A DNA stretch of 64,000 nt. It comes from Ascoidea asiatica JCM 7603 (Eukaryota > Fungi > Ascomycota). The DNA is taken from positions 1,432,526-1,496,525 of the forward strand of contig BCKQ01000003.1 of NCBI GenBank assembly GCA_001600695.1. Reading direction: 5' to 3'. Positions 1-23,205 of this stretch are shown here, piece by piece (the stretch's first letter is position 1; every line of letters begins with the position of its first letter). Under the pieces are notes generated by a model. That model saw nothing but the letters and a program-made list of their open reading frames with translations. It was not told where the DNA came from and did not search any database. Made by a program: the position numbers and the translations under genes.

Positions 1-3000
1 GGAACTGTTACACATGAAACGTAGTTACATTCCATATGACCAAAAATAAATTGGTTTAGGAACATCCGCTGTGAACCTACTAAAAAATTAGCGGTATTGT
101 TTAAGACTATGATAGAGGTTGTGGTAGGATGGATAAATGCTTTAGTTCACGTAAATTTTAAATGGTCTCACAGGTTCTTTGAAACAAAATGCAACAACGT
201 TTATTACTTTAGATAATGTTCCAACATTAGGGGAATTAATAAAGAGTTTGGGGACTATTGGCGCAGTTAGTGGTAATTCCAGTATGCATTCTATTTCTTG
301 CAATACGTTCGGAACTGATAAGAAGAAAGACAAAGGTGATAAAACAAAGTCTGAAATGAATATTTCCAGTTTATATTCCAAGAATAAAAATCATGTTAAA
401 TATCACTGCTTTAAATTAAAGAAAGACAAATCTGTAGGTGATCAGAGTAATGATGATTCTGGTAGGGTAAATTCATTATTGGGTAATGCGGGCCTAGACA
501 CATTGAACACTCTTACTATTAGTTTAGTTAATTTTAATAACACTCATTTCTCTAACAAAGTAAAGTTAGATTCTGGTACAAATGTTTGTCTTACAGCTTA
601 CTTGGAAGTTTTTCATAACAATGAAGTCTTTAAACATTCCAGCCTTAAATGCGAAGGTCTTGGTGGTGAGCAATTTAAACCACGAGGAAATGGAAAATTC
701 ATTCTAAGACTAAAAAATCAAATAAACAAACTTGCAGTTTTATATGTGCCTGATATTTCCAAAACAATTTTATCAGTCACTGTTATGAAAAAGGGAAATA
801 TTCCTCCAAATTTCAATTCAGAAATAATGGAATATAAATATAATACAAATAATTTTCTTGTTATTGACAAAATTCCATAGTTAGAAAAAATGTATGGGAT
901 TAAAAATTATAAAAGTACTAATAGAATAAAAGTTATAGGAGCTAGATTACATGAAAAACTCGGCAATACATCCACGGTAAGATTAAAATCTAGCTACAAA
1001 ATATGGTGCAATAACAATTCAAAGTGACAATGAAACAGCTGATGATGCTACCTCTGATACTTGTAAAATAGGAAAATTAACAAACTTGCTTAAAGAGTAA
1101 GTAATTACTGTATTCAAAATTTAAATATGTAGGAAGTAGTAGAAATGGATTTTATTAGCCCTTTTTTTCAAATAGTAGAGATCTAAATAGGGTAGAAAAC
1201 AAAGTGGTACTCACACCTTAGGTGCTGAACGGCTAAAAGACACTTAAATATAGTATAGTTAACACAGTCATGTAAATACAATAATATTTATACAATATCC
1301 ACAATTAAGAATAAAGATGCACATATAATCACAAATATTCATAGCCTTGCCTAAGTTGCATCAGGCAGCATTCATAATACATATATTTACAAGCGGACGC
1401 ATGCGGATCTCTACATGTAGACAGCTAGCAGAACCTCAAGTTATATTCTACTGACATAGCATAGCAGCTCCGCATTTCGGTCAGGTAGAGCGTACAAATT
1501 AGAAAAGACCTTGAGATTGGTACCAGTAATAGTCGAAAAGCCCTTAGGACCATATTAAAGGGAATCCACTCCGTAAGGATAGCATAAATGATCAGTCCGG
1601 ATTTAGCCTATCTCCTGATAGATGTTAAACCCGAAATGCCCACCGGATCCAAACGGGACTCTGTCTAGATGGTTGAATTGCTCAACCCTGGTTTGATGTA
1701 AGATAATAATTATTACTGTATAGGCCGACTTGTGTCGGAACCAAGAGGAGTTTCGTGGGGATAGTCTCCTAAGAGTGTATCGCTTAATCCGGTTTCCGGA
1801 GTTAATATTATTCCCATAAATAGCTCCCGTCTGTACGTCACTGGCAGGTTGGCTAATTGCTGAACCGTGGTAAAACTTAATAAGAATTTCAATTGATAAT
1901 TAATCAAATTTTGAAACCTTTTTATATGGTAAGCTTAATTCCGAGCCAGATTCTACCAGTAATTGTAGCATTTTCGGCAATTGCTGAAAAATTCCGATGG
2001 GTGTTCCGGAAGCATATAGGAATGCGGAACTAATATAATAACAATAGATTTGATCTTATTTTTTTAAATTATTTGATTTAATTTTCTGTTTAGATCATCT
2101 ATTGCGACGAGTTTAATGACTAATACATATAAAGTAGAATTTTTATAGTGGATTTTGTAAAATGAATGCAAATGCACCGGAGTAGTAGCTTTCAACCAAA
2201 ATTTGCTAAGGTAGTTACGGATAAAAAAACTAGTTTTACAAGTACGCATTTTCTCATATCAAAAAGTGAGGTATTAAATAAAATTATTGAATTTAAAGAG
2301 TTTGTTGAAAGACAATTTCACTCAAAAACTAAACAACTATTTTTATATAATAGTCGTGAATTCAAAAATAACGAATTTTTACAGTTCTTTGAGAAGTTTG
2401 CTGTTAAACTTATGTATAGTTTCCCTTATTCAACACCTGCAAATGGTAGTGCTGAGACATCTAATAGATTTTTAATAAAAATTGCTAGGACTTTAATGGA
2501 AATTCTTCATTACCTAAAATTTAGGCTTATTCTGTTTAGGAATTGCGACACGAATTGGTTACTAATATGTACAATACCTTAATCACAAGTGGCGGATATC
2601 ATCGTGTTACCCGGAAGGTACTTGATGCTAATAAGGTTATTCCTTTATGTTCTAATGTTTATATTAAATTACTACCAGTTGAGTGGAAAGTTGCAGAAAA
2701 AAAGATTGATGGAGTTTACTTAATGACGTTTACCAATTAATATGGTCACATTGTTTAGATCCAACCAATGGATAAAAGTATTGGCACAACACTATGTATC
2801 CTACAAAAGAAAGATAGTATAGTGACAGAAATTATAATTCAGATATGATTTATGATACTTTTTCAAATAATGATGAAACCTATACATATCAAGAAGACTC
2901 AGAAGTAATGCTTGAGAATAAAGGAATTAATGATACAGATCAAGGATTGGCATCCACCAATGGAAACAGAGATACTACTGTAGCTCTAGAAAGAAGTGGA

Positions 3001-3600
3001 TATATTACCAAAGTTGCAGTTACTGAACTGGTTAAAGAACCTAATACAACAGTTGGTTCGGATATTGTTGAATTAACGTGAGATATTCTTGAGCAAAATG
3101 AAAATTCTGCCGAAAGAATAATCACAGATGATGTGGAGCGTCCTACCGTGGATGGTGAGAATTATACAAATAAGGACAGGGAGATAAAGGAGAGAATGAA
3201 ACTTAAAAGACGATTTCATACAATTCCAGAAGAAAGTTTTCATTCGGAAAAAAAATCAAAAGCTTTCTTCTTTGAAGCTACTCTTAGGGTTATTAAGTAC
3301 TTGGCAATTAATGTAAATCAAGTCAATGATAATAAGTTAACCACAAATATCATTTATGTTCTTAAATTAAGATGTAGAAATCTAATAAATAAAAAATAAC
3401 AAAATAAGAAATCTAATTCTAAATTTAGTAGTTGAAAACTTCAATATGTTACAACACCTACTAAAAAGAATCCAATTCCACTTTTATGGATATTCACTTA
3501 TGAACAATCTCCTGATAATAATTCAAAAAGAAAAACATGAGTGGTTCTTTCTGGTGATAAAGGAACTGAGAATGATACATATTGTAGTAGTTGTTACAAA
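1..3600 (+). mobile_element. Degenerate Ty1/copia LTR retrotransposon (gag-PR-IN-start of RT), 5' end outside window, interrupted by a ~1 kb insertion
   Basis: ORF 179..880 has a decayed zinc knuckle (HVKYHCFK) and protease motif KLDSGT plus LYVPDISKTILSV. Past the TAG at 878-880 the frame continues LHEKLGN and later DTCKIGK (integrase Zn finger), then EMDFISPF (~1142-1165). ORF 2166..2582 has the integrase core VVTDKKTSF...SKSEV...YNSREF...PYSTPANGSAE. Around 3473-3580 the sequence reads PIPLLWIFTYE...KT*VVLSGDK (copia RT start). Order PR-IN-RT is copia. Many stops and frameshifts. Confidence 0.88.
1196..2209. mobile_element. ~1.0 kb non-coding insertion inside the copia integrase (possible solo LTR of another family)
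   Basis: Separates integrase motifs MDFISP (left) and VVTDKKTSF (right) that are normally ~15 codons apart. Flanked by GGTAG at 1191-1195 and 2210-2214. Visibly GC-richer than its flanks, with no credible ORF. Confidence 0.65.
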
Positions 3601-4828
3601 TCCAGAGATCCCTGAGGTTTTTCGATTTTTTCTACCTCGCTTAGTCTCACAGTTCAGGATTTAACCTAAACATCCTAATCAGATTATTCAACAGTTCAGC
3701 TAGAAGAGACAGACGTTAGCACTTGTTTCTCAAGTTATTTATGGATAGAATCAATAGTACTTAAAAGAATTGAAAATTCTTCTCAATAAACTTAGTGTAT
3801 CTTCAACCAATAATAAATGAGTAGACAAAAAAAATATTAATAATAAAAGAAAATAAAATTAATTAATAAAACACATCTATAATAACAAATAGAAAAAATA
3901 AGTACTATACTTAGTTTGGAACTGAATTATCTTATCTTGCCGTATTAGTTTCATTAATTTCAATTTACGTTAACTTGTTTTGTTTAATAAAATCTTTCTA
4001 ATATTTGTTGGAGTTAAAGCTATAAAAGGATTAGTTTGTATTGGCACATACTATTAAAAGCGAAGATAATTTGAGCTGTATAATATTTTTATGAGAAACT
4101 TAAATAAAAAAGCTTAGTAATCTTTTTAATTTTTTATTAGAGATAATTTGATGAAATTGTTAGTATAATAATTGATACTTAAGAACGGAGAACTATAGCT
4201 AACGATAGTTGACAAAATTAGTATCTGTAAAAACAAAAATATAAAATTTGAAAAAACATAGAGCAACGGAAAATGGGGAATGGCAAACACATAATTTGTA
4301 TAGTAATATTGATGCAGCGCAAAATGCGAAACAGAAAACTGAAGTTCTGAAAAGATGAAAAATCAAAATATGAACAAACAATAAATATAAATTTGTAGTT
4401 GCTTAAAATTGAATTCATTAAATTTGTAGCAAAAAGTTGAAAATAACAAGTGGAATAAAAAGAATAAGAACGGAATGATCTTGAGCTTTAAGTTACAGCG
4501 CTGATCTGTTTAATTTCAAAAAATTGTTAGTCTAATTATTTTTATGGAAACACGCATCTAACTTACATCTGACATTGAAATTTCGTTTAAATGTTTGTAA
4601 TTATCTACTAAAATGCTTTAACCAGAAAGGAATGATTTGGTTTATTATAACAATCAGATAAAGGGATTTAGAATTGTTGTATTGGTTTTATAAAATGTGT
4701 TGGATAATGTAAAAATATTTTATGTTGAAAAAATTGTGTTTTTTTATTTTGGTTTGTTCGGTTCTCTGTAGGTGTAAATAATGGTTGAAATTCTGAATGC
4801 TCAAATAAATTTTTAAATGATATTATAA

Positions 4829-5350
4829 TTTCCTTCCTCCCTCTGCTGAAAATGGATGTAATTGTTTAAAACTATTCAAAAATCTTTTTTCTAATTTAAC
4901 TGGAATAGATTTGGATATTTCTTCTGTGATAATAATTGTAGTTTTTTGGGTTACAATATTTATGACTGATTTCATAGCCTTTGCCTTATTATTATATGTT
5001 GGAATTTCTCAAATTTGACTAATTTGATTTGCTCCTGACATTAGTGGGATGAAATTTTATTATTATTATTTTGTGAATATTGTGAAAACGAATATTCATT
5101 AAAGTAGATTAAATTGAACGCTAAATCAATTTTTTGTAATCCAATTGGTATTTCTAATTTATATGAATTGTCACTATAATTTTTGAGAACCTTTAAAAAT
5201 TGATTGATCTTTATTAGTATAATTAGTGATGGCTTTTTTATATACTAATACAAATTCTCCCATTTTAAATGTTTTCTCTAATAATTTTTTCCTTAAAATT
5301 TCTCTTCAGTTAATTGAAGCTTTCTGACTTACTTTTCTTCCGGGTGATAT
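4829..5350 (-). mobile_element. Ty3/gypsy relic: integrase C-terminal (GPY/F) region and polypurine tract
   Basis: Manual minus-strand translation with frameshifts gives KTFKMGEFVLVYKK...KDQSIFKGSQK and SDNSYKLEIP...AFNL, matching the F.VGD.VLV...K..P.F.GP...N.Y.L.LP pattern. It ends in purine tract AGAGGGAGGAAGGAAA (4844-4829) followed by TTATAATA (possible decayed TG start of a 3' LTR). Confidence 0.7.
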
Positions 5351-5724
5351 ATAATAATTGCCTACAACTTTGTAATAAAGACACCGCTGTTAGAAAATAT
5401 CTCATCTGCGTTCCGCATTATTGTAAAAAAGCAAAATGTCTTGAAAAATATAAAAATATTTTAAGAGATTTACAACATTGACAAAGTTCCTGAGAAGCGT
5501 AAACGGTATTGCGCATCTTTCCATTAAAGTAAAATATGTTAAAAGAGTATTAAAATATTATAGAAACTTTGTTATTATTAAAAAGTGCTTACCAGCTCCG
5601 AAATTTACCTGCGCTGCTTAAATGAAAAGGTGTTTGTGTAGTATCACTACCTTAAATATATTAACACTGCTTACATTTTCAGGAATGTGTTTGTGTAGCA
5701 AAACTACAATTAGTTACAGTTCTT

Positions 5725-6102
5725 TGTTACTCAAATTACATTTAATTTTCATAATTAAAAACTCAAGTATTAATTATCTGAATTAATATGAAAGGATCTA
5801 ACAAAAAATGATATAAATTAAATAGAGCAAGATACAATATATAGAATAGACGATTATGGCAAACAAAAGAAAATATTAAAAAGAAGAGCAATACAGCTAT
5901 TATTACTAATATTAATATTAAGGAAAGAATTAATAACATATTGAATATATAGCATCATAAATGGACCAATAATTTAACATTTAATCTCATTTAAATGTTA
6001 TTTTTAAAAAAAAATCAATAAAGAGTTTCAACAATCCATACTCATCTTACACCGAAATCACCAGTATTTGGTATGTCAGATATAAATCAACATCTTCCCC
6101 TA
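5725..6102 (-). mobile_element. Probable 3' LTR with polypurine tract
   Basis: Minus strand reads AGGGGAAGA then TGTTGA (LTR start at 6092). A possible end ...GTAACA at 5725 gives ~370 bp. No second copy was seen, so the end is uncertain. Confidence 0.45.
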
Positions 6103-7621
6103 CGGCAGATAGCACTGCCAAATGTCAGATAATTGTCAATTAGTGAAAATTCAATTTTCATTTGGAACTACTGCTTGTTGGGTAGTCTTCCACATTTATT
6201 GTTAAACCTGTGGTGTGACTTAAGTAAGAAGGCGGAGCTGGGTAAGGTTATCTGCAAAATAGATATACTATTTAACTTATAGTTCTGAGCTTCTCATATA
6301 CACAATTACTCTGCTTTTTCTTGAAAAACTCCGAATTCTCGAATAGTCCTGAGTTTGTGGGTTAATGTTCAGTTTTACTTGTGGTTCAATAATCTGTTTT
6401 GAAATTTCGATCATTCTACAAAATTGAATATATACATTTTGCGTACTTACAAACTATGTACTAATGAATTAACACTTGCTAATCGATGATCTAAAAAGAA
6501 AACTAAATAACTTATATGTAAAAAAAATAAATTGAGATCGATTCCTTTTATATTAATTCTGGATTTCTACGGGCTCCGCAGAACTATCGAGAATTCTCGG
6601 GAATTCCCAAAACCGCCAGGCTTCCTTCGGAGAATCAGGGTGGGAAGCAAGTATACCTTTTAGAAACGGCTGAAAAATAGATTAAAAATCAATTGAAACT
6701 CACATTTCAACTTTACAATAGTATACCAAACGGTCCACTTTCTTGTGGGGTAGACAATGAAACTAATTGTCCGGAATGATCTCTAATCCCGAACCTCGCA
6801 CACGAAATTGCTTCTTTCGGGACTAGATCTACTAGTATCCTGTTTACTCCAAGACAATTCGCTCTACGCTGTAAGGAATCGATTCAAATTAAATTAAAAT
6901 CACTTACTCCCATTTGTCATTTATTCGTCCACGGTTTCAATTTCCGAATATATTCCGTCCCAGCCTATCCTTTAACATTTGTCTAATTTCTTTAGCAAGT
7001 TAACGTCATTTTATGGATCTCCTCCGAGTAAACCTTTTTTCAAATTCATATACTATTTTTACATAATATCCCCCCCAATCAACAATTTCCCCTCCTTGGT
7101 CAAGTTTTGAGTCTCACGATCCAACTATTAAGTCTCTCATAAAAACTACCATTATTATTTATGTTCAACACTTTAGTTTCATAGGTCATTGTTTCAGCAT
7201 CAGCATCCCCAGTTGAATCTCTTACAACAATATCCATCATTTGCATGTGAAATCAATTAGTGGTATCTTCCACATTTTCAGCCTCAAAATCAAACAATTT
7301 TTCTTTTACAGTTTCGCCACCAACGCTGACGCTTACAATTTCAACAACTATTTGTCATTTTTACTACTTACAATCTTACAATTTCAACAATTATTTTTAA
7401 ATATTCATGCCTTCAAAATCTGTATAAATACTGTTATATTTCTTTTTTTATTATTTTAAATTATCTGAATATTAGGCAATAACTTAGCAACAATTAAGCA
7501 ACAATCAAGCAATTTTAAGAGTTAAAAGTTAATCAACAATAAAAGATTTTAAATCAATATATTAAAGAGTAAAATTAAATTAAGAAATCTAATTTTTTTT
7601 GGATCACCCCCCCCTCCTTGT

Positions 7622-8188
7622 TACACTTCGTTGGTCGTACCTTTGGTTGTTAATAGTAAGCATTTTGAGCTACTATTTAAAACTCGTCGGCACCTGGTGA
7701 TATTAATTATCGTATTGGGTGAGTAGGATTGTTAATAATCTTACAACGGTACACATATTCGAATATTCACAACTTGCGGTAAAGCGACTGTTGCTACTAA
7801 CGAGTTTAAGGTGTTCTCCCAATTGATCGCTGGAGATATGGTATACAGAGCTACGATTATTAAGCCTATGGAGTTCAAAGAAGATATGTAAAAATACAGG
7901 GTCAGCGCAGGTGAAGAATCAATCATGGCCGAGGCTAAAAGACTGTTGAATAAAACAGATAATCCTGAAATGGCTATGCTCAATCTAGCACAAATTAAAT
8001 AGCACTACACAATTGCAACCCAAGACAGTAACCGCCAAGATATTGGCATTGACAGTAAAGATATTTATGTTCCAAAAAATGATGATATTCCAAAAATGAA
8101 AAAAAGTAAAAGACGACAGTACTTTGTATCTCAAAAAATTAAAGCCAAGCAGATTTATTTTAAGGACAGTATTTTAACCGTACATTAG
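7622..8188 (+). pseudogene. Stop-interrupted reading frame of unknown origin (~189 codons)
   Basis: One frame without frameshifts: YTSLVVPLVVNSKHFELLFK...YNGTHIRIFTTCGKATVATNEFKVFSQLIAGDMVYRATIIKPMEFKEDM*KYRVSAGEESIMAEAKRLLNKTDNPEMAMLNLAQIK*HY...SILTVH*. Five internal TAA/TAG stops, more G/C-ending codons than host genes, followed by (AATA)4 at 8189-8204. Confidence 0.5.
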
Positions 8189-8339
8189 AATAAATAAATA
8201 AATAAATTAATGCATACCTTTCAGCGGCATTGATTTACCGCAGACCACTAGCGTGGCACAGCAAAGGGGATTAGACTTATGAATATGTCACATTGCCTAT
8301 CATGTCTTATTACATCTTTTAAGGTAAAATGTGTTTCCC

Positions 8340-9529
8340 TTTTCACTGGTTAATAATATGCCAAGTACAGGTAAGTATCCAATAACGGACCAGTTGATCA
8401 GAGTTGACTGATTCATTTGATCTGATGCATTCCGGCGATCTAATATCATCTAAGTCAGGATGCAGTCTCTCACAGAAAGAACATAATTCAAAAATTGGAT
8501 CATTTAAAAAAGAAAAATATTTCTTGGGTGGATTTGGGGTATATATGGCATAAGTGATAGGAGATCTATGAGCATAAAATCCAAGATAATTTATATTTTC
8601 TAAATTCTTAGGAATTTCATCTTTGAAATGAACATTTTTCTTTTTCAGCTAGGCATTATATAAATATTAAATGCTCTCTGATTTGTTATCATAAAAAGCA
8701 ACGAAAAAGAGAAGTATTAGAAGTAAATGATGGTGAAGATTTATTTTTTTCTACAATTTTCGATAAGTTAATGCTTAAATTTTGGAAATCATTGGTAAAT
8801 TCTTCTGGTAGGTTTGAAGGAATCTTGGAAGCAGAGCCTAAAGTTGGAGTTGATAGAGTTGATGAAGAAGTAGGTTCTTCATAGTTTTTGTTAAATCTAT
8901 TTTGATAATTCGGGGAAGAATATTCAAATGATGATTCAAGTTCCTTAGATTTTTGGTGTGCCTTTTCATAAGAGAAGGTACTATCTGTTGGATCATGTTT
9001 AGCAAATGAAGAATAATGATTTAAATCCCTAATGAAATCTTTCCAATTTTTGTCAGGATTAGTAACTCTTTGGTTTGACAATAATTTTTGATGTAGTTGA
9101 AGGATACGAGGGAATGGTGAGAGTAAATAAGAATGGATATTTGTTTTCAAAGGAATGATAAATACTTCTCCAAGGAATTTTATTTTCTAAACTTTTTTGA
9201 TCTTTTATCATTTAATCAATAATAGAAATTAGTGTTCCAATTTCATTTTCAGATTCCTCATTAGAATTTGCTTTGATTTCTTTGTAGTTTTTTTTTAATA
9301 TATTCTTGAAATCATTGTGTCTTCTAATATGTTTTGGTATTCTATGAAGAGCGTCAGTATAATAATTCCTGTTTATTTTATAATAACGTTCATAATCTAA
9401 GAATAAAACTGTGAAGAAAATATGAAGCTTTTTAGATACCTTTGTTGTAAGATGATTGATAACAGAATATTCAGGGATAAAATATAATGTTACATGATCA
9501 TTAAAATTGTGAAAATAACTATTAATCAT
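8340..9529 (-). pseudogene. Decayed gag-like reading frame of a second retroelement (possibly gypsy type)
   Basis: ORFs 9212..9529 and 8689..9150 are not RT/RNaseH-like. The second ends in a broken zinc-knuckle-like string RCFL**QIREHLIFI*C, and a further open stretch (~8640-8340) contains CSFCERLH. Confidence 0.5.
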
Positions 9530-12500
9530 AGATGGCTATTAGTAAACCAGTTGATGATTTAAAACAGCAGTGGTCTGATAGTAGTTGAGTACATTCTAGC
9601 AGAAGTAGAATGTTTTTAAAATGAAGGAAAAATGATAAAGGATATTGTCTTACACCATAAAGAGCTTTCTTCAATTTAACATGTTTTTTGATAAATTGGG
9701 CATTAAATCCTTTTGGCGTTCTAACAAAATAATTGTCTTCAAGAATTGTACCATGAAGAATAGCTCTTGAAATATCAAGTGTTTTAATCTTAAGCCTGTA
9801 ATGTGCAGCGTATGAAAGGAGAATTCTAAAATGATGCTTATTCAAAATAGGACTACTGAATTGAAATTTTGATAGTGTTGCATCATCAAACTTTTCGAGT
9901 TGGCCATATACAACAAGTCTTGCTTTATGCATAAGATTTAAACTGATATTATCAAGTTTCATATTAAATATCCATCCTGCAGCAAATACCTTTGCACTCT
10001 TTGGTAAAAAATCAGTGCCTTCAAACACTTCAAATTGTGTAATTTGATTCTTTTGAATGTTGATAGCATCTTCCCAAGCATGATATTGGATTGCATGTGG
10101 ATAAGATTTAGGAATAAACTGATCATCAGATAAATTAATTTCCAAATCTAAATTTGTTGGTGGAAGAAATTTATCGTCTAAATGACTGTTCTTGGAGTCA
10201 ACTTTTGTTTCAATAGTCGTTGGTTGAGAAACAAGTGTTTGATATATTGGATTTGCCGAGCCAGGATTTGTAGCTTTGGCAATAATTGACAAAACTTTGT
10301 TAAAAACATTACAAGAATCAAGTACTCTAATCTCTGTAACTCTTGCAATTGAATCTAACAAAAAAGTTGTAGTTGCGTTACCACCCTTATAAGTACATGA
10401 GTACTCATTATATCCAAGAAATATTCCATATTCCCAGCTATTTGTGTTATGTCTATACAATACATCAAATCCAAATAGAGGAAAGGTAAGCTTATTTGGC
10501 TGTCTCTCATAAAATACAAATAAAGGAATCTCATTAGTTGAGGAGTGAATTTGCCTGTTTATTAAATCACAAGCAAATTCTGTAGCTTTATTAAATAGAT
10601 GTTCATAATAAACAGAGGGAGGGGTGATGAAATAAAATTCTTGATGTCATATATTTAACTTTTCTAATACCAGATTCCAATCTACCATTATGGAAAAATG
10701 CATATCCGTCTGGTAGTCCAATCATTGTATTATATTTAGATTTTTTGTACTCTGTTCCGATATCAATTTTTAATTCAGGTTCATTTAAATTTAATCTACT
10801 CCTCCATTTTGAAAGAATTTTATCTATTTCAGGGCTAACAGAAGCTTTGTCATTCACAGTAAATGCAGTTGTGAATCTACTGTAATCATCCATTATAATA
10901 ACTCGGTATTTGTCATTGTTTGTCCTGTGATGTCTGAATGTACAATTTGGAGCTTTCTGACTGTTAGTTTAGCTAGCAAAGTTGTATTGTGAGAATTATT
11001 TTTCACATTAATTAATTTGCAAATTTGACACAGTTCAATTTTGAATTTTTCATCTTTGGTTATTTTGTATTGTAGCTTAAGCATTGCTGAAGCAGATAGA
11101 TGACCTAATGAATAGTGTAATTTAACTATTTTATCTTCGGGAATACCTAAATATTTTTCATTAAGACTAGGAAGTTTCACTGAATTTATGTCAATAATTG
11201 AATCCTCATTATCCTGTAGAGAATATGAATTATCAACATCTTTTGATCCAGGTGACTAGGTATTTAATTTTTGAATGACTAAACCTGGTTGAGAATTGTT
11301 AAGATGTTATGCAAAGTTAATTGATGCATTTTGTTTGACAATTTCTATATATTTTCTTACAAGAAGTCCATTTTCCTTATGACCTATGATGAAGTTATTG
11401 CAGGAAAGTTTACCATCAAGTAATTGAAAATGTCTGTCATCAAAAGCAGCAAAACTGATTAGGGTTCTGCCATTTTCAATGAGCATAGCTGAACATCTTG
11501 TGAAGAGTAACCAGGAAACATGATAGTCATAGTACCAGTTCCTTTAGTGTACTCTGTGGTATCACCAGTTCCTTTAATTAATACCTGCCTTGTTCTAAAC
11601 TTTTTAAGTAAAGTTCTATCACTGACAACAGAGATGCTAGCCCTTGTATCCCATAAGATAGGATGAGAAGTAGTATTAACATTTCAAAGAAAGAAACAGC
11701 TGTTTCCTTCAGCAAATGAAGTAGTTGATGATGGAGTTTCAGCAGTGTTTGCATTATGTTTGTATGCATTGCTGTTAGTACCATTATACTGTTTTCAATT
11801 ATGATTTTGTGAACCAGAAGATCCTTGATCATTATTATTTAATCAATTTGAGTAGTTATTATTGTTTTTAGACGAATCTTCACTTCTACAACCCATAATT
11901 TTATTTGAATTATTAGATGATATATTACTCTTGTTTATGTGCTCACCAAAAGTATGTTTGGCTTGACAGCCACGAGAATCAGGTTTAGAATCTTTGAAAG
12001 ATTTTTTGTAGTGACCATTACTTTTATTTGAACTAGGAGAATCATTATTATTTGAGGATCGTTTTTGATTAACAGTATTAGAAACATGAGTTTGAGGTGT
12101 TTCTTTACCAAATATAACAACATTAGCATTAGCATTATTATTATGTTGTGGTAAGTTAACATGTTTATGGTTAATCATTTTAATAATTGATTCAAATTTA
12201 ATACCTTTTTCATTGTCAAGTAATTGAAGCAAATACCTTTCAAGATGTTTTGCCAATCCAGCGAATCTTGAACATTCATGTTTGATTCTGATTATTACAT
12301 ACATGGTTTCCCATTCTGTACCAAGTTTTGAAAAGGTTTCTGAAATTCTTTGGATCCATTATTAGGACTATGAAGTATTTGAGGAAAGTTGGTAACTTTT
12401 TCAAAATCCATTCCATTAAGTCTTTGTAGGCAATTTGCGAAGATATTACCATCTGCAACCATGGAATTTAATTCATTCCAGAGTTCGATAGATGATTTGT

Positions 12501-14533
12501 TTCTCCAAAGCTATGCTTGTGCCCTGGGAACAATATCACGAAATGTTGATGATAATGCTTTGTCAGGCTGCTTACATTAATAAACTGTTGTTGGAATATC
12601 ATCACCAAATAAGAAGTGAAAGAAATTTGTCATAAATAAGGTCATGTCAATAGGTAAAGGAAATTGTACCAATTTCGATAGATCGTCATCCCCTTGAATT
12701 TCATGTTCAACTTCTTTTTTTTGAATCGAAAATTCATCACTTCTTGGATCAAGGGTATATTTTTTTGAAATATTTTTAAGTTGAATACGCTCAGAAGCAA
12801 GGACATGAATTGCACCTTCAATTCCAGAAGACATTATTGAAAAGTTTGTAGCAGTTGTAGACGCTATATGATCAAAAGAATTAGTATGATCAGTTGTTGT
12901 TCTGCTAGCAAGACTTGAAAAATCAGATAGATTATTAGAATTAAAAGTTTCTGAATCGGATTCTGAATGAGATGAGGCAGATGAATTTGGCTCTAAAGGG
13001 AAACCAAATTTTTCCAAGTAGGTATTGCCTTGAAATGCAATAATGAAAAGTAATTAACTTAAAATATCGGTAGTTAAAGCTTTGGTACATTAAATAAAAA
13101 ACAATTGAAAGATCAGGGAAATAGAAATAAGAAAACATATTTCTAAATTTTTAATGTTTACTCTGATTGATTTCCAATCAAATTTTTGATTAAGGTGAAA
13201 TTAAAAATGTTGATACAAATATGAAATCAATTTAGAAAAATCTGCCTAAAATTGATATTAAATTAATAACAATTTAAAATGAATATGTTTTTTTTTAGAA
13301 TTGGAATTGTATTATTTTGCTTTGAATACAGTTTTAAAAAATATTCTACATTTGAGTGTTGAATTGCAATTAAATTTAATTTTAGATATAAGTTTAAAAA
13401 CTAAATTTTAATCGTTCTAGAAATAATAATAGTTATTTGGATTTGATTTTTATTTTTGCAATGATTTAAAAAAATAAAATTCTAAATTTGAAAAGTTAAT
13501 GAATTAGTAAACTAGTTTTATTTTAGGTTAGTTTATTAAAAGAAAAATTAATATTGAAGAAGCAGTTTAATTGATTATACAACTATTTCTAATTATATTG
13601 TTGTTTTTGTTATTCGATTTAGATTTTGATAAGAATTTATAACAATTGCTTGAAAACTTATCAAAATACTTAGTTTTTTTTAAAAGCTATTATCTGTATT
13701 CTTAATATAGTTTAATTATTACTAAATGGCTTTCAAAACTCCCCATAGAGGCGAAAGAAGTAAGTTGCAGAAAACGTATTTCAATATGAGCAAAATTTTG
13801 ATTCCAGAAGGAATCTAATAGTATAACTATATGGTTTGTACAGATCATTATCCCCGTGACCAAAATAAACCTATAAGTGGCGCAAGGTTAGCCTATGTGG
13901 CTCTTTGGAAGAGTGTGTAGTTAAACCTGTACTCAACGTAAGAGACTTTATGAGGTCTCTTTACTAAAAAAAAGTAGGGTAACTAAATAACTTTTGAGGT
14001 GTATTTGGCAAAAATGGGCTGTGAATATCAGACTTTTGGTAGTGTATTTAGCAAAAAGTGGGCTGCCCTTGAAATATGAAATTTTTGAAATGTTTTGGAA
14101 TTTAAGAATTTTCTAAATTTTTGAAATAGTTGAAATTTTCCAAATTGTTTTTTTTTTTTTTTTTTTATTTCAATTTTAAAATATTAATTCAAATTTTGTT
14201 TATTTATATAAAGTTATATATAAAATCTATCGTAAAAAAATTGGCAGAGTTTGTATTGATTTTCTTTATATCAGAACAAAATGTTTAATATAAAAATCTG
14301 TTCCACCAGCTAATCTATTAGCACTACCAGCCAGCTCCACCAGCTTTTTCTTATGGAATTTCACTCATTAGTTTTGATTGAAATGTTGTAAACAGTTGGG
14401 AATTAGACAAATAAAAAAAAAAAAAATAAATGGCAATTGAAAGTTAAAGAAAACTGAGAGTAGCTTTTGATTTGAAGAACCGTTCCTCCACAGTATTTTA
14501 TGATATGGCTGTTTTAATCTTAAATCAGCTTCA

Positions 14534-14543
14534 GCTCATAACC
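14534..14543 (-). promoter_or_regulatory. Primer-binding site complementary to the tRNA-iMet anticodon arm (Ty5/half-tRNA type)
   Basis: Minus strand GGTTATGAGC directly after the presumed LTR end, matching the GGTTATGAGCC-type PBS of Ty5-like elements. Confidence 0.8.
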
Positions 14544-14859
14544 TATAAGCTGATATTCAAGAAGTCCTTGATTTCTTTTCCGCGAGGTAAAGAAAAACAA
14601 GGTATTTTCTTGTATTTATAGATCAAGAATCAAGGGACAGTTTAGGACTCAACCTTGGTGAAATTGCAAATAAGATGTGGCGCTCAAAGAGGGTAACGTG
14701 GTTCATTGTGTGACACGATGGGTGACATGGCCCTTAAAGCCTAATATCTTGCAAGCAACTCACTATGACGGCGGTTATTTGCATCTAATAATATAGACTT
14801 GTCTAACCTGCTTTTGGCCTGAAACACATCTCATTTAGTGGTTTTAAAAACGTTTTACA
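14544..14859 (-). repeat. 5' LTR of the Ty5-type element
   Basis: Lies just upstream of the PBS and contains CTATAAATA (14621-14613). Likely start TGTAAAAC at 14859, though this boundary is uncertain. Ends TTATA rather than CA. Confidence 0.6.
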
Positions 14860-16114
14860 TACGTAAAAGAAACCTGCATAATTTCAGTTGTTGCCAAGCT
14901 TGTTGCTCTTTGGAAAACGTTTTTCCAGCCTTGTAACGTGGATGCCCTCTCTAAGTCGAATCAGAAATTTTTAGTTTTACAAACAAATTTCAGTTAATTT
15001 GTTTCTAATTTTTAATGTTTGGTATGCTTGATTGTATTCTTTTATTACTATATTTTTGTACACTTATTTAAACTTTAGTAACTTATGTTTTTTGTTTGTA
15101 TGGTAGAAACGTCCCCCATTTTTGATATAATTTCGTTGTCTAAGGTTGATTTATTATCTCACGTTCAATTAACTATTCACTTCATTGTTACAGTTATTAA
15201 ATTCTATGGGGACATTTTTTTTAATTTATTAAAGAAAAGAAACTTTATTATGGTCTAAAAATAATAATTTTTTACTGTCATTTTATTTATTTTTTTAATT
15301 TTTTATCATTAATTTACTAATGCTTTCTGACTATAATACTATAGGTATATTTCTATACTCATACTAAACTCCAGAACTTCTGTCCTATAATCCCAAAATA
15401 TATCAATATTCTTGGTCGTTCATTAATTTTATTTCTTGACATTTTGATTGCTATACGACTAGTAATATGGTCCTTTAAAACCTTTTTGGTTAACCATATT
15501 AACAAGGTAATAAAAGTCTGCCTAATTTATTCTTTCTTTAAAACTGATTTCTGCTCGCATATTGTACTTTTTCTTTGCCATTGAGTCTATTTATTGCAAG
15601 GTTTTTGTTTTTACTTGATTTTTGGTGTATTTTTCTTTTAATTACAGTATATCTCAATTCTGTGAATTTACCTTTTGCATACTTTTGTAGAATGATTAGT
15701 TGGGTGTACTCTTTGTCATCTACTCTCTCATCGCGTACTTTTTAAGTCAAAACTAAATGATTATCTAATGTGTCTCAAAAACGCCACCAAAACAATTGAT
15801 AAAAATATCACCAGGCACGCCAGATACGCAGGTTGAACTAATGGAAAAGTTTAAATTGGTAGAATAGCAATAACCTCATAAACAAAAACAAATTGATGAA
15901 GTAAATTAAAATACTAAATTTGGCATACTTCGTGGGTAACGACATTAGTAGACATCTGCGAACTATTGACAGAAATGCGTCTTCGACCATTTGCGACCTC
16001 AGTAACCACAATGCTCAATTAGGGTAGCCTTTAAGCATTTTCTTTCTCATTTTCCCAACATGTCCGGTGCTTGTTCTATTATTTTTTATATTTTTGTTTT
16101 AATTATTTATTATT

Positions 16115-16490
16115 GTGTTGATGCATATCTGTATCATTTGTTTATTTGTTAATGATTTCGGGTTTCCTTTTTATTTATGATACTTCTGTGTTTCATTTTT
16201 AATTCTTTATACAGTTTTGTATCAAGTTTATATTTTCATACATTTCGGTATCATCTCTATTTTTGTGATAAACATTTGTGTCATTCTTATATCGGATATT
16301 AATTTGGTGTTTCAGTTTGTATTTCTTGATACATATTCGTATCCGTATGCAATCGGTTTACATTTCTAATTTTTTATTTTAAACTTTTGATACACTTTTG
16401 TAAGATTTTTATTTTTTCAGATACACTCCTGTGTCCTTGTGAACATTTATGATATGCATCAAGGTTCGGATTTAATTTGTGTTGTTTATA
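16115..16490. repeat. Degenerate ~29-31 bp tandem repeat, ~12 units, core TGATAC-N5/6-GTATCA
   Basis: Cores recur at about 16119, 16151, 16178, 16207, 16236, 16266, 16295, 16327, 16357, 16388, 16419 and 16450. Confidence 0.75.
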
Positions 16491-18180
16491 TCATTTTTAT
16501 TGTTTTAAATTTTAATGTTATTATCAAATCAATTTGAAAATATCAATCAGTCGAACCATTACCTAATGAAGTTCAGCTGTCAATATTTAAGCATGGAACG
16601 AAGTTCCCAGTTTAGTTAAATATTAATCAGAAAAATCAGATTTACATTTCATCTAGAAAATACTTCGATTAACAGCCTATTTTCTTTAATGTCCACAGTA
16701 TTTGCTAACTTAGTTAAACCGAGCGGCAATCATTGTCCTATAAGATTATATTTTCTTAACCCATTATTAGTTTTATTTAAAAATAGGGCCATTCATATAT
16801 AGGGGACGCTCGTAATTAAACAACATATGTAAATTTTGCACTGAGTTTTTTGTTTTTCACTCCCTCTATAATTAAGATTATTAAGGGTAAAAATTAAAAC
16901 TTAATTTTAAACTGACTTTCAATTCTGACATTCACCCAACCAAGTTATCTCTTCCTTTAGATTGAGCTTTAATTCAAACAAATTCAAATAATTGAGTTTA
17001 TAAAAAGACCATTCCATAAATATTTGTGAAATCATCCTACAACCGCCTCTATATAACTTGTACAGGGCATTCATTAATCGAATTTTTTATTGCGCATTAT
17101 CTCAAATTACATAACGTGTAATTTGAACTGTGAGATTCCAGCCTAATTAACCAAAACATATTCTACCATTAATCTAATATTGTGTCACTCATGAAGTTGC
17201 GAAACAAATCACAACCCTTACCCAACTTTTCTGTTGTTAATTGAATACGAGGGCGGTTAAAAAAAACAATCCAGGGGCACGTCACAGCCCAACCTGCAAA
17301 TTTAGTTATGGATTCCCAATAACTTTACTGTTAATGTGTTACAATTTTCCCTCATCGCAGTGATAAATGCTGCCTCATCCTGAATTCGTGAACTACAGCA
17401 CACGCACCTACTATAGTTTCGGAGGCTGCTAGGTTTAAACAAATATGTTCATGGTTTAAATTAATTATAGCAATGGCGGCGGCATCTAAAAACCATTTTT
17501 GTTTGATTCTACAATTATGGACGTTGTGTAGTCAGTATTATTTTCAAGTTTTGTACTATACTGCTGACCTTTGTCTATTGCCGTTGATTACTATAGGGAA
17601 CTATATTTACTCATATAAGGTAAAAATGTTTTTTTTTGGAATACAGCTGTAGACTGGTTTTTCAATAATTTTCAAATATACTTTAAATGATCATTTATTC
17701 TTGTTTTAGTCAAGTATCAGTATATGTTTTCCTTTGTGTACACTACCGGTAGCTCGGTTCCTGCGCCAAAATCCTAATTATATTTGTGTTTTGGAATCCA
17801 GTTAGCTTGTTAATCTGCCAAGAAGAATTTCAACGATTTTGTGTTTTGACTCAATTAATAGAAAACCAAAGGAATTAACGTTTATTAGACGCATATGTGT
17901 TTTGTGTTGCAAAGGTAGTTTAGAGCCGGAAGTCTCACGTTAGTAGGGCAATTTTGCACAAGTGTTTTTTTAGCTTGAGTCCTAAGGGTCTGTCAGTTAG
18001 GCTCCGCATAAATAACGCCCTAATTTTCTAAAAAAAAACAGGACAAATTTCATGTGTGGTCCTTTAAATTTGGAACAGAGGAAAAATTAGTAAATTTTAG
18101 TTTTCTGTATACCTGAACTTAAGTAGAAAAAGTAACGCTAATTAATAAATAAGTGGAGCTCTAAGTGTCTTCCTTTTATC

Positions 18181-18471
18181 AGTGGAATTCACGTGACTTC
18201 CACTTATAGCGCCACTTATCAAAAAAAAAACTTGTTCAAAATTGCTCTAGTATTTATCGGAAAAGGTAAATAATATTCATCTATAAAAGCTAAACTGGTC
18301 TTGGTTTTTTAATACATGTGTGCGCTCGTAGAACCCAAAAACAGCTTTACGACAAGAAGCAATAATGCTTATATTAATTAAATTAGGCTAAACAAGCCTT
18401 TGCGTGGGTAATGAGGTTTACTTAACCATGTGATCTTTATAACATGTGACATCTGCTAGAAGAGTCACATG
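18181..18471. promoter_or_regulatory. Cluster of bHLH E-box (Cbf1/CDEI- or Pho4-like) sites
   Basis: TCACGTGAC inside the 24-bp near-palindrome AGTGGAATTCACGTGACTTCCACT (18181-18204). RTCACATG at 18427-18434, 18443-18450 and 18464-18471. CACGTT at 17936-17941. Confidence 0.55.
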
Positions 18472-19275
18472 ATCTCTTAAAACATGGTCGGTTTATGTTT
18501 TGGGTAAATATTTAAGTTGTCTATGTGCAAAGATGAAACTTAGTCATCTTCTTACCACTTTTATAGTTAGTAAGACAAAATATACTTATATTTCTTATTA
18601 TATTAAAGGGATAACTATTTTGATTGTTAGTGTGGCTGCAGCTTTTGAGCTACGTAAGCGTGTCAGGGTTGTTTTGTATTCTTCCGTCTGTTTCACTCGT
18701 ATTTTTATTTTTCTCTTCTTCTTCTGTTTTTTCTTCGTCTAAATTATGTTCTTCATCTTCATCAGTTTTAGCTGTTAAAGACGAGTGGTGTATGCCATTT
18801 TGATCATCTTTTGTTCATATTTACTGGTTCTTCTTCTGTTGAATCTAATCTGTTCAATTTATTGGTAGGATTTCTGTGAGGTAGAATAGACATTTTTATT
18901 TCGAATTCCCCATTCATTTCTTCTAACCTGCTCTTAGTTTCATTAAGTTTCTAGTCAATTTCATTTAGTTTGATTTCATAGCAATTCTTTCTAAATCTAA
19001 ATTAAAATCAGGGTCAAATTTATGAATTTTTTAACTTATCATAATTTTCATTACATCTATTCTTTCTTTACAAAATACTCTAAAGTATTAAAATCATTTT
19101 CTATTCAAATTCTTTAATTTATATCATCTCAAATATCGTTGATATTTTAGATTATTTATATCTTTTGTATCATTTGTTTTTTTTGGCTATTTTCATTCAA
19201 TCATTTCTTCTTCTGTTTTCGCTGATTATTAAAATCATTAAATAGATAATCAAGCAGGTAAGGAACTAAAAAAAA

Positions 19276-22182
19276 ATGACAGATTCAACTGATACAAAAA
19301 ATACAACTACATCTTCTGTTATTTCTTCTGTTATATTCAATAGTGTAATATTAGGTTCTTTTACTCTAGCTTTTCTATTATTGAGATTAAAATTTAAAAG
19401 AATTTATCAACCAAAATCTGCCTTTAATCTAGTACCAAATGAGAAAAAACCTGAACCATTACCTCCTGGAGTATTTAGATGGTTGATAATTTTATTGAAA
19501 AAAAAAAATAATTTTATAATCAAACAAGCTGGCATCGACGGTTACTTCTTTTTAAGATATCTATTTTTAATCTCTTCAATTTCTTTAGTTTCGTTAATTT
19601 TTATTTATCCAGTTTTATTACCAATCAATATAACTGGTGGTAATAATAATTCAGGTTTAGATAAATTATCAATATCGAATATCAAAAATTCAAAAAGATT
19701 ATATGCTCATGCACTTTATTCAATGTTTTTTTATTTCTTAATATTATTTATAATTTATAGAGAACTAATTTACTATATAAATTTAAGAGCAGCGATTTTA
19801 TCTAGTCCCAAATATGCAACAAATTTATCATCCAGAGTTGTACTTTTTCAATCCGTACCAACTCAATATCTTAATGAATATGAATTTTCCAAATTATTCA
19901 ATGGTATTAAAAAAGTTTGGATAACAAGAGCTCATAAAGATTTATCAAAAAAACTAAACAAAAGAGATAAATTAGCTTTTATTTTAGAAAGTGCTGAGAA
20001 TAAAATTTTAAAAAATGCAATGAAAATTAAAATAAACTCAGATAAAAAAAATAAAATATTAGAACCAATTGATGAAATTTCAACATATATTAAAACTAAT
20101 AAAAGACCAAGTCATAGATTAAAGTTTCCAATTTTTGGTAAAAAAGTTGATACGATTAATTATTGTAAAACTAATTTACCAAAATTAAATAATGAGATTT
20201 TAATTTTACAAAAAAATCATTCAATTTCCAAACCAATGAATTCTGTTTTCGTTGAATTTGAAAATCAATATTTAGCTCAACTAGCTTTTCAATCAACTCC
20301 ACATCATACTCCATTGAATTTAGGACCAAAATTTATTGGAATTTCTCCTGAAGATATTTTTTGGCCAAATATGAGAATTTATTGGTATGAAAGATTAATT
20401 CGTTCTTTTGTTTCGGCTGTAACTATTTTTTCTCTTGTAATTTTATGGGCTTTTCCTGTAGCTTTTGTTGGTTTGATTTCAAATGTAAATTATTTAACAA
20501 AGCAATTATCTTGGTTACGTTGGATTAATGATATTCCAAGTTCTTTGTTAGGTATTATTACTTCCTTATTACCAACTATTTTATTAGCATTATTAATGAT
20601 GTTATTACCTGTAATTATAAGATCAATGGCAAAATTATCTGGATGTGTTTCAACTCAATATATTGAATACTATACTCAACAAGCCTATTTCGCTTTTCAA
20701 GTTATTCAAGTTTTTTTAGTTACAACTATTTCATCCTCTGCAACTTCAACTGTAACTCAAATTATAGAAGATCCAACAAGTATCATGAGCCTATTATCTG
20801 AAAATTTACCAAAATCTTCAAATTTTTATGTTTGCTATATTGCCCTTCAAGGTTTTTCAATTTCAGGAGCTCTTTTATTAAACTATAAAACTTTACTAAT
20901 GTTTTATGCTTTAGGTTTTTTATTTGATAAGACTGTTAGGAAAAAATGGAGTAGATTTAATATTCTTGATAATACTTCTTGGGGTACAACTTTTCCAATT
21001 TATACAAATCTAGCGGTTATAACTTTTTCATATGGAATAATTTCTCCAATTGTTTTACTATTTGCATTTGTTGGATTTTCATTATTATACATTGCATATT
21101 TACATTCTTTAACTTATGTTCAAGGGGAAAGTGCAGATTCAAGAGGAATTCATTACCCGAGAGCTCTATTTCAAACCATAGTTGGTATTTACCTTGGTGA
21201 GATCTGTTTATTAGGTTTATTCATTGTTGGTAAAGGTTGGGGACCAATTATTCTAGAAGCTATTTGTTTAGGTGTTACTATTTTCGTTCATACTAATTTA
21301 AATAAAGCTTTTGATAAATTAATGACAATTGTACCTGTTGATACAATGAGACCGTTAGATGGTAATTCTGATACTCCTTCTTTTTCATTTTCGAATAATA
21401 ATGGTAATATTAACAGTACTAGCAGTAATAATCCTAACCAAAATTCTCCTTCAACTAATCCTCTTTCATTTGGTAATAATATATCAGTTATTAATGATCT
21501 ACCTGAATTCAATTCAAACTCAAACTCAAATTATAATTCTACTTCAAAAGGCTTAAATCGTAATTCAAATTCAAATTATTCGGAAACTACAAATGTTTAT
21601 GAGAATATTGAATTAGAAATTAAAAATGAAGAAATTCCCTCATCTTTATTAACTCCTTCAAAAACAAGAAATACAATCCTTACTGAAATTTCTGTTGCTA
21701 AAACTCAAAATGAGCTTGATACTCTTGCAAATGTTCCATTACTTGCGGATGGTGATAATAATCCAATTCCAAAAGCTAATGCGATTATAAGATTTTTCAA
21801 ACCACATATTTATTGTTCTTATAAATTTCAAAAAAACTCAATTCCAGATTTATATAAAATGATTGATAAAGATGAAATTAATAAAAATTATGAACATGCT
21901 TATGATTATCCTGCTGTTAGTGCAAAACCACCGTATCTTTGGATACCTGAAGATCCAATGGGCTTATCTAAAATCGAAATTAATAATTTTGAGGGTATAA
22001 TCAAAATGTCTGATAACGGAGCTTATTTTGATCAAAATGGTGAAATTTTTTGGACTTCAGATCCTCCTGAATATGACAAAGAGGAATATGATATTAATTT
22101 TGATGATATTAAACTTGAAGATAATGAATCAGATAATGATATTGATATTAAAAATGCGAAAAGTAGCACAGATAAATATTAA
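19276..22182 (+). CDS. OSCA/TMEM63 (DUF221) family membrane channel, PHM7/RSN1-like
   Basis: 968 aa. RIYQPKS, AGIDGYFFLRYL, SVFVEF, FQVIQVFLVTT, LPKSSNFY, YPRALFQ, LWIPEDPMGLS and many TM segments. Confidence 0.95.
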   Translation: MTDSTDTKNTTTSSVISSVIFNSVILGSFTLAFLLLRLKFKRIYQPKSAFNLVPNEKKPEPLPPGVFRWLIILLKKKNNFIIKQAGIDGYFFLRYLFLISSISLVSLIFIYPVLLPINITGGNNNSGLDKLSISNIKNSKRLYAHALYSMFFYFLILFIIYRELIYYINLRAAILSSPKYATNLSSRVVLFQSVPTQYLNEYEFSKLFNGIKKVWITRAHKDLSKKLNKRDKLAFILESAENKILKNAMKIKINSDKKNKILEPIDEISTYIKTNKRPSHRLKFPIFGKKVDTINYCKTNLPKLNNEILILQKNHSISKPMNSVFVEFENQYLAQLAFQSTPHHTPLNLGPKFIGISPEDIFWPNMRIYWYERLIRSFVSAVTIFSLVILWAFPVAFVGLISNVNYLTKQLSWLRWINDIPSSLLGIITSLLPTILLALLMMLLPVIIRSMAKLSGCVSTQYIEYYTQQAYFAFQVIQVFLVTTISSSATSTVTQIIEDPTSIMSLLSENLPKSSNFYVCYIALQGFSISGALLLNYKTLLMFYALGFLFDKTVRKKWSRFNILDNTSWGTTFPIYTNLAVITFSYGIISPIVLLFAFVGFSLLYIAYLHSLTYVQGESADSRGIHYPRALFQTIVGIYLGEICLLGLFIVGKGWGPIILEAICLGVTIFVHTNLNKAFDKLMTIVPVDTMRPLDGNSDTPSFSFSNNNGNINSTSSNNPNQNSPSTNPLSFGNNISVINDLPEFNSNSNSNYNSTSKGLNRNSNSNYSETTNVYENIELEIKNEEIPSSLLTPSKTRNTILTEISVAKTQNELDTLANVPLLADGDNNPIPKANAIIRFFKPHIYCSYKFQKNSIPDLYKMIDKDEINKNYEHAYDYPAVSAKPPYLWIPEDPMGLSKIEINNFEGIIKMSDNGAYFDQNGEIFWTSDPPEYDKEEYDINFDDIKLEDNESDNDIDIKNAKSSTDKY

Positions 22183-22752: not shown

Positions 22753-23205
22753 ATGACAATCAATACAAATAAAGAATATTTAAAAATATTTAAAAGATCT
22801 GAAAATGCAACGTTACCAACAAAAGGATCTGAATTATCAGCAGGTTATGATTTATATTCGTCAGAGGATGGATTAATACCTGCCAAAGGACAAGGAATGA
22901 TATCAACAGATTTAACAATTATTGTACCAATTGGTACATATGGTAGAGTTGCACCAAGATCGGGTTTAGCAGTTAAAAATGGAATTACCACTGGTGCTGG
23001 AGTTATTGATGCAGATTATAGAGGAGAAGTTAAAATTGTTTTATTCAATCTTTCAGATAAAGAATTTAAAATTAAAAAAGGTGATAGAATTGCACAATTA
23101 GTTTTAGAAAAAATAGTTATGGCAGATATTTTAGAAGTTGATAATATTAAAATTGAAGAAACTTTAAGAGGTGAAGGAGGATTTGGTAGTACAGGTAAAA
23201 ATTAA
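22753..23205 (+). CDS. DUT1: dUTP pyrophosphatase
   Basis: All five dUTPase motifs: [40 protein letters not shown]. Confidence 0.98.

Follow-up and report, generated by a model that had tools for sequence, protein, structure and literature searches.

A gene-free island of nested LTR retrotransposons with a Ty5-type element in Ascoidea asiatica: a centromere candidate that may instead be one transposon sink among many

We analysed a 64,000-nucleotide window of the Ascoidea asiatica JCM 7603 genome (contig BCKQ01000003.1, hereafter C3, positions 1,432,526-1,496,525; the assembly comprises 20.3 Mb in 71 contigs), together with 80 kb to its left and 10 kb to its right, and listed the open reading frames (ORFs) of this region. 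The left part of the window belongs to a 28.9-kb gene-free island of long terminal repeat (LTR) retrotransposon remnants, one of them of the Ty5 type, which a preliminary description of the window had put forward as a possible regional centromere. The island is probably best explained as an old, repeatedly struck nest of LTR retrotransposons, a "sink" devoid of genes within a chromosome arm, of which the genome has many others; we put the probability of this reading at roughly 0.5. Although the island deserves consideration as a centromere candidate, the odds are somewhat against its being the centromere of the C3 chromosome.

The evidence behind the sink reading is as follows. The island contains pieces of at least ten repeat families of very different ages, with two nested insertions. 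The same families recur in about 20 zones of the genome, including two further zones on C3, at 57-94 and 474-540 kb. The island coincides with a synteny breakpoint and carries a copy of one repeat, family J, at each edge, the two copies being inverted relative to each other. Finally, we saw no base-composition signature of a centromere.

Extent and setting of the island

The gene-free block spans C3:1,422,937-1,451,800 and reaches 9.6 kb leftward beyond the window; the preliminary description had given at least 19 kb without a host gene, a figure that our analysis upholds and extends. According to ORF listing, Pfam searches and homology, all ORFs of at least 150 amino acids between the PI3K/PI4K-family kinase gene on the left and the RSN1 orthologue on the right are transposon fragments. 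Both flanks are gene-dense, over at least 70 kb leftward and at least 55 kb rightward, in agreement with the earlier statement that the relics abut gene-dense DNA. With 1.42 Mb of contig C3 (2,066,014 bp) on one side and 0.61 Mb on the other, the island is interstitial rather than subtelomeric in the current assembly; a subtelomeric cluster would, by the preliminary description, have spoken against a centromere.

No tRNA genes or Rfam families were found in the island. Nor did it contain a strong tandem array or satellite, as Tandem Repeats Finder (TRF) reported only short arrays of 2-9 copies with scores of 51-159. We also considered whether the island splits an ancient VPS34-CSC1 gene pair, and dropped this idea because the right-hand gene is the RSN1 orthologue. 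No recorded sequence matched the RSN1 protein of the window exactly.

Repeat content and nesting

DNA searches against the same genome showed that most of the island recurs elsewhere and that its pieces, from at least ten families, are 66-93% identical to their other copies. Identities reached 93% for family H and were 86-91% for family B, 77-79% for family A, 66-83% for family C and 67-71% for family I; this spread of 66-93% indicates that the island was struck over a long period. From left to right, the island consists of J split by F, G, C, A (interrupted by C), I, an inverted C, D, E, B, an inverted G, J and H (Table 1). Pfam recognized only copia domains, namely Pol_BBD at 179-880 and RVT_2 with gag_pre-integrase within 9522-11180, and a further 20 ORF pieces from the island yielded no domain outside these two copia relics. 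Positions without a contig name are those of the window; L036 marks coordinates to its left (L036:700-5566 corresponds to C3:1,423,225-1,428,091).

Two nested insertions are documented, and the four or more nested or truncated LTR-element relics of the preliminary description are well supported. First, a family C repeat lies inside family A. The parts of family A on either side of it (1-1165 and 2190-3589) match about ten dispersed copies at 77-79% identity, and the LTR and 5' end of the element lie left of the window (L036:8704-10000, with the LTR at L036:8704-9559). Second, a 4.5-kb family F element, whose 282-bp LTRs are 83.7% identical, splits the left-edge copy of repeat J. This inverted J copy consists of C3:1,423,225-1,423,327 (90% identity) and C3:1,427,872-1,428,091 (78%). 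Family F looks like a non-autonomous LTR derivative, because none of its tested ORF pieces matched Pfam.

Among the other families, the C copy at 1166-2189 is 66-72% identical to more than ten copies elsewhere and 69% identical to a sister copy at L036:7549-8580. Self-comparison of the island revealed an inverted sister of the G repeat at L036:5563-7136, with 66% identity. Copies of family I were located on C1, C29, C15, C32, C12, C8 and C26, and on C3 itself at 535,850 and 62,622. For family H, more than 25 copies match at 75-93% identity, and some of these flank copia elements on C27 and C7.

Four of the five sites in the window that match RTCACRTG, the CDEI consensus, fall within 282 bp (18190-18471). 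We rejected this cluster as a locus-specific feature: three of the four motifs (18427, 18443 and 18464) lie inside the 225-bp family H solo LTR, which is multi-copy, so that the cluster is mainly a property of the LTR family and not of the locus. The RTCACRTG sites in the family H LTR echo the enrichment of Cbf1 sites described for Ty5 LTRs (PMC13017519).

Two observations concern the assembly. The best-preserved copia copies (C6:902 kb, C2:1434 kb and C18:40 kb, among others) are mutually 92-97% alike and contain runs of N of 514-1512 bases, which makes the very long "open frames" of some of them masking artefacts. Several repeat families gave mirror-image matches with identical identities between C41:26-30 kb and C32:63-67 kb; the probable cause is a contig duplicated in the assembly or the presence of both haplotypes.

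Transposon zones on C3 and in the genome

Counting by eye, we found about 20 zones with at least three matches to any of the families on contigs C1-C19, several contigs having two or three. On C3, the zone at 57-94 kb contains three RVT_2 matches plus repeat I, and the zone at 474-540 kb contains repeats C, H and I plus a family A solo LTR. Both appear larger than the island, which weighs against the island as the centromere. The preliminary description had held that many such clusters per chromosome would refute a centromere. For transposon clusters in general this situation largely applies, as C3 has at least three zones; for the Ty5-type family, family B, it does not apply on C3, where that family occurs at a single site, inside the island. 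Gene-free retrotransposon islands are too numerous in this genome to mark centromeres by themselves.

Family B occupies about 13 zones genome-wide, and this distribution is a useful lead toward the centromeres. C1 carries two of these zones and a solo LTR, and C2, C5-C9, C12 and C13 carry none, a tally over 71 contigs in which chromosomes are not delimited; this uneven pattern weighs against the island as a centromere. H2A-H2B gene pairs, which have been reported as linked to Ty5 clusters, lie on C10 and C11 at 60-240 kb from transposon zones and were uninformative.

Synteny of the flanks

Both island flanks are conserved in A. rubescens, but they are separated there, which places the island at a synteny breakpoint. 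On scaffold KV454477.1, the genes from DUT1 to NUP192 are collinear over 43 kb (1,127.7-1,170.4 kb) with a 41-kb block of the window that starts at DUT1, including the common order NUP192-MRPL32-PPTA-CDC10, where PPTA is the prenyltransferase alpha-subunit gene. RSN1, HLH, PI3K, HORMA and RNR1 form a group at 529-552 kb on that scaffold, so that the two flanks are about 575 kb apart. The HLH gene, flanked by RSN1 and PI3K in A. rubescens, lies at a distance of 45 kb in A. asiatica. The A. rubescens sequence to 10 kb from each border contains no gene-free block or island. In the outgroup S. crataegensis, the DUT1 and RSN1 neighbourhoods show neither arrangement and so do not polarise the rearrangement. 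The inverted repeat J copies at the island edges are 78-90% identical; the break in synteny relative to A. rubescens could stem from an inversion between copies of this kind.

The right flank begins with RSN1, DUT1, an Asn-rich ORF, a SecY-family gene, an asparaginase-2-like gene, BRO1 and an RF-1-domain gene. After a 6-kb gap free of ORFs follow a WD40 gene, DOC1/APC10, a JmjC/F-box gene, CDC10, the prenyltransferase alpha-subunit gene, MRPL32 and NUP192. The left flank contains genes for the PI3K-family kinase, an AAA ATPase and a HORMA protein, then RNR1, Gti1/Pac2, DRE2, STD1/MTH1 and aminotransferases. The gap itself (38180-44200, about 6 kb between the RF-1-domain and WD40 genes) lies 10 kb from CDC10; its GC content is at background (20-28%), and it showed no notable repeats and no composition signal.

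Base composition

GC content in 2-kb windows ranges from 17 to 34% across the window and is 29.2% in the island versus 25.8% and 25.0% in its flanks. In 38 flanking genes, GC content at third codon positions (GC3) is 3-24%, with means of 0.15 at less than 20 kb from the island, 0.18 at 20-45 kb and 0.10 beyond 45 kb. Centromeric GC3 troughs in the literature are 100-300 kb wide. We detected no GC or GC3 trough and no AT peak at the island within about 70 kb to the left and 55 kb to the right, a test that is local only because the published troughs are that wide. A GC3 trough was among the checks suggested in the preliminary description; locally none was seen, and GC3 does not fall toward the island. 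Genes at C3:1,358,000-1,377,000, which is 45-65 kb left of the island, have a GC3 of 3-8%, below that of the island-adjacent genes.

The Ty5-type element

The family B copy in the island is truncated inside the reverse transcriptase (RT) region at 9527 and is 86% identical over 5.2 kb to copies of about 6.5 kb at C4:1,539,396 and C11:607,961. It retains element-level copia features: an LTR, a primer site, gag/pre-integrase and RT domains, and the copia order. We identified 14544-14750 as the LTR because these last 207 bp recur about 20 times alone. Just inside it lies the 10-mer GGTTATGAGC, which also occurs at the equivalent place in the C11 copy (612,935) and twice in the C34 copy; the genome contains 18 matches to it versus 4 to a reversed control. 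From the canonical yeast sequence, we take GGTTATGAGC to be the complement of the anticodon loop and stem of the initiator methionine tRNA (tRNA-iMet). A primer site complementary to the tRNA-iMet anticodon arm is diagnostic of the Ty5 family (PMC12711049, PMC13017519). A search with the 13-nt canonical Ty5 primer-site pattern, allowing two mismatches, gave no match; the 10-nt core alone is present. In a comparison made without a reference Ty5, the RTs of the copia families were mutually only 22-33% identical. By its half-tRNA primer site, conserved among copies, family B is classified as Ty5-type, and the earlier report of such a site thus proved correct.

The CDC10-MRPL32 gene pair

The preliminary description placed CDC10 and MRPL32 about 36-39 kb from the cluster; we measured 35.1 kb for CDC10 and 37.7 kb for MRPL32 to the island edge, with the pair about 12 genes away. 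The centromere linkage claimed for these genes in S. cerevisiae agrees with the reconstruction in which the ancestral centromere Anc_CEN1 lay between DOM34 and MRPL32, a location conserved in Saccharomycetales, Saccharomycodales and Phaffomycetales (PMC12711049). In K. phaffii, the pair is at 1.59 Mb of chromosome 4, whereas CEN4 has been placed at 79-85 kb (PMC5010909); in either record orientation, the two are separated by no less than 100 kb. The pair in S. stipitis has no gap within 10 kb. We interpret CDC10-MRPL32 as an old microsynteny that persists without a centromere. In S. cerevisiae, RER1 and citrate synthase adjoin the same centromere as the pair; in A. asiatica, none of these genes is on C3, RER1 being located on C16 and both citrate synthase genes on C5 and C11. 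A single ancient gene pair is too weak an anchor for centromere synteny. The suggestion that the island occupies a position conserved with a point-centromere locus therefore retains the presence of the pair, but is weakened by its being a pair only, by its distance, by its non-centromeric place in K. phaffii, by the dispersal of RER1 and citrate synthase, and by the lack of an island at the A. rubescens borders.

On C16, RER1 (87,429-87,971, +) adjoins the sole trehalase gene, NTH1 (88,989-90,659, -), and copia matches lie at C16:26-36 kb, about 51 kb from these two genes. The first genes beside the point centromeres of S. cerevisiae include RER1 at CEN3, NTH1 at CEN4 and NTH2 at CEN2. The RER1-NTH1 adjacency may have been left by ancestral centromeres that exchanged arms; as a synteny lead, it is superior to CDC10-MRPL32 in the window.

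Table 1. Coordinates of the island's repeats, its boundary and flanking genes, and the family B zones of the genome
Feature	Position	Strand	Evidence or remark
PI3K/PI4K-family kinase gene, left boundary of island	start codon C3:1,422,936	-	
Copia family A, decayed, internal region	1-3589	+	Pol_BBD 179-880; tblastn to copia pol 987-3702
Family C repeat, about 1 kb, nested in family A	1166-2189	+	interrupts family A alignment; without TG..CA ends
Family I repeat, about 1 kb	4357-5336		67-71% identity
Family C, partial inverted copy	6386-6875	-	75-83% identity to loci matching 1162-2177, opposite strand
Family D repeat, LTR-like, about 0.9 kb	6863-7748		74-84% identity to copies on C6, C9, C10, C12
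Family E repeat	7747-8694		89% identity to C10:22,260-23,199
Copia family B, Ty5-type, internal, gag to part of RT	9527-14543	-	RVT_2 (E 1e-20) and gag_pre-integrase
Primer-binding site core GGTTATGAGC	14534-14543	-	directly inside 207-bp LTR
Family B 5' LTR, 207 bp	14544-14750	-	about 20 separate matches to query 5018-5224, some solitary
Family G repeat	15954-17101		68-71% identity to copies on C15, C11, C18, C32, C29, C12
Family J repeat, about 310 bp	17941-18252	+	intact; inverted relative to split left-edge copy
Family H solo LTR, 225 bp, young	18375-18599	+	about 0.7 kb upstream of RSN1
RSN1 orthologue, right boundary and first right-hand host gene	19276-22182	+	four RSN1/PHM7 Pfam domains; 62% identical to A. 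rubescens Rsn1p
DUT1 (dUTPase)	22753-23205	+	Pfam dUTPase; 71% identical to A. rubescens
CDC10 septin	54334-55305	-	Pfam Septin E 5e-110; 90% identical to A. rubescens "septin CDC10"
MRPL32 (mitochondrial ribosomal protein L32)	57018-57680	-	Pfam Ribosomal_L32p
Family B zones, internal	C1:1935 kb, C10:424 kb, C11:606 kb, C15:353 kb, C18:153-165 kb		
Family B zone	C20:68-70 kb		
Family B zones near contig end	C1:25 kb, C4:1504-1546 kb, C19:4-8 kb		
Family B zones on seemingly small contigs	C32/C41, C34, C38		
Family B, lone LTR matches			a few, besides the zones

Discussion

A transposon sink of this kind could have arisen in simple steps. An intergenic gap would take a first insertion, and later elements would prefer the dead copies, where insertion is cost-free; the Ty5-type family, relatives of which target silent chromatin, might have contributed. 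Truncation and LTR-LTR recombination would then leave fragments and solo LTRs, and ectopic recombination between the repeats could turn the site into a rearrangement breakpoint.

Several points weigh against the sink. Family B is present only once on the 2.07-Mb contig C3, in the island. Its approximately 13 zones come near a plausible chromosome number if split contigs are allowed for, and such a pattern marks centromeres in S. stipitis, D. hansenii and C. sargentensis (PMC2997560, PMC12711049). With its 29 kb and its decayed copia and non-coding LTR derivatives, the island matches the centromeres of S. schoenii (26-34 kb, PMC13148404) and S. stipitis (20-40 kb, PMC8546629). Moreover, a gene pair that once adjoined an ancestral centromere sits 35-38 kb off.

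These same points favour the leading alternative, that the island is a functional regional centromere of the C3 chromosome, or its core plus pericentromere, of the Ty5-cluster type. We regard this as possible, though we hold it only tentatively. Such a centromere would be specified epigenetically, by CENP-A chromatin occupying a gap between genes into which Ty5-type elements are drawn to integrate, an arrangement we would likewise advance with reserve. Consistent with it are the half-tRNA primer site, the interstitial position, the length of gene-free sequence inside gene-dense DNA, and the Ty5 clusters at putative centromeres of another member of the Ascoideales, S. fibuligera (PMC13017519). 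The neighbours of Anc_CEN1 nearby (PMC12711049) also fit, as does the synteny break, centromeres often being rearrangement breakpoints. Speaking against it, besides the zones elsewhere on C3 and the uneven spread of family B, are the missing GC or GC3 trough, AT peak and satellite array in the region examined, and the lack of positional conservation in A. rubescens, as examined to 10 kb from each border. Of the preliminary proposal of a retrotransposon-cluster centromere, the graveyard, the Ty5-type element and the gene pair are real; the centromere identity is that of a candidate, in a genome with many other zones.

A histone H3-like match (E 4e-41) lies at C3:1,802,938-1,803,327, in a frame of 191 amino acids, longer than the three canonical H3 genes with their 140-154. 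This match may represent the Cse4/CENP-A gene, on the same contig as the island.

We consider it unlikely that the island is a relic, either a former centromere abandoned when the centromere moved elsewhere or the scar that remained when transposon copies recombined, by inversion or translocation, and brought two formerly distant regions together. The separation of the flanks by about 575 kb on one A. rubescens scaffold, the displaced HLH gene, the inverted repeat pair at the edges and the age of most elements (the left-hand element has an LTR pair just 83.7% identical) would suit such an origin; however, the direction of change cannot be set, as S. crataegensis has neither arrangement, and the 93%-identical solo LTR points to insertion that was still fairly recent. 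That the island is a working centromere descended in place from Anc_CEN1 (DOM34, CEN, MRPL32-CDC10) is similarly improbable; if true, it would widen the known range of conserved centromere location and of the Ty5-cluster stage from the Saccharomycetales, Saccharomycodales and Phaffomycetales to Ascoidea, of the Ascoideales.

Should the island be a centromere, it would add a data point for the Ty5-cluster stage and for constant location despite structural change. The underlying ideas have already been published (Nature 2026; PLoS Genet 2025): Ty5-cluster centromeres, conserved centromere positions, in this case across three orders, and an origin of point centromeres from Ty5 LTRs (PMC12711049, PMC13017519). 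As it stands, our finding is mainly a caution on calling centromeres from transposon islands.

Comparison with known centromere systems

Our literature search found no paper on Ascoidea centromeres, and the island can be set beside systems described in other yeasts. Its likeness to Anc_CEN1 lies in MRPL32 and its neighbour CDC10, which are present in the same chromosome region as the island. The difference is one of distance: there, 1-5 shared genes directly adjoin the centromere, whereas here the pair is about 12 genes (35-38 kb) off.

In S. schoenii, of a sister genus in the Ascoideales, centromere cores mapped by Hi-C are 26-34 kb long and contain decayed copia remnants (PMC13148404). The island resembles them in belonging to the same order and size class (28.9 kb), in its complex non-tandem sequence with two decayed copia pol relics in a gene-free core, and in its housekeeping-gene neighbours. 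It differs in composition and surroundings. The S. schoenii cores form the strongest AT peaks on their chromosomes and contain small satellite arrays, with mating-type (MAT) cassettes nearby; the island is GC-richer than its flanks, and neither an AT peak, satellite islands or a real TRF array nor MAT genes were seen in the window and flanks examined.

Ty5-like clusters mark centromeres, one cluster per chromosome, in S. stipitis and D. hansenii (PMC2997560) and also mark those of O. polymorpha and C. sargentensis (PMC12711049); they are found at putative centromeres of Saccharomycopsis fibuligera, of the Ascoideales (PMC13017519). In S. stipitis, the clusters of the Ty5-type element Tps5 span 20-40 kb (PMC8546629). 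The literature on which the preliminary description drew is thus sound and covers several orders (PMC2997560, PMC13017519). Like these clusters, including those of Tdh5 in D. hansenii, the island is a gene-free region of tens of kilobases with a Ty5-type copia element, its LTR and non-coding derivatives; it has a primer site matching the tRNA-iMet anticodon arm and is the single such locus on C3. In the Ty5-cluster species, however, all Ty5-like copies lie in exactly one cluster per chromosome, an assignment backed by Hi-C, chromatin immunoprecipitation or GC3 troughs. The island has a single truncated Ty5-type copy among at least nine other families, and Ty5-type zones are unevenly spread in this genome, with two on C1 and none on several large contigs.

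The Ty5 element of Saccharomyces integrates into Sir4-bound silent chromatin at telomeres and HM loci. As in that system, a Ty5-type element has collected in a gene-free site that is transcriptionally inert, although the island is interstitial and not subtelomeric. Because Saccharomyces Ty5 clusters in silent chromatin, clustering of Ty5-type elements need not signify a centromere.

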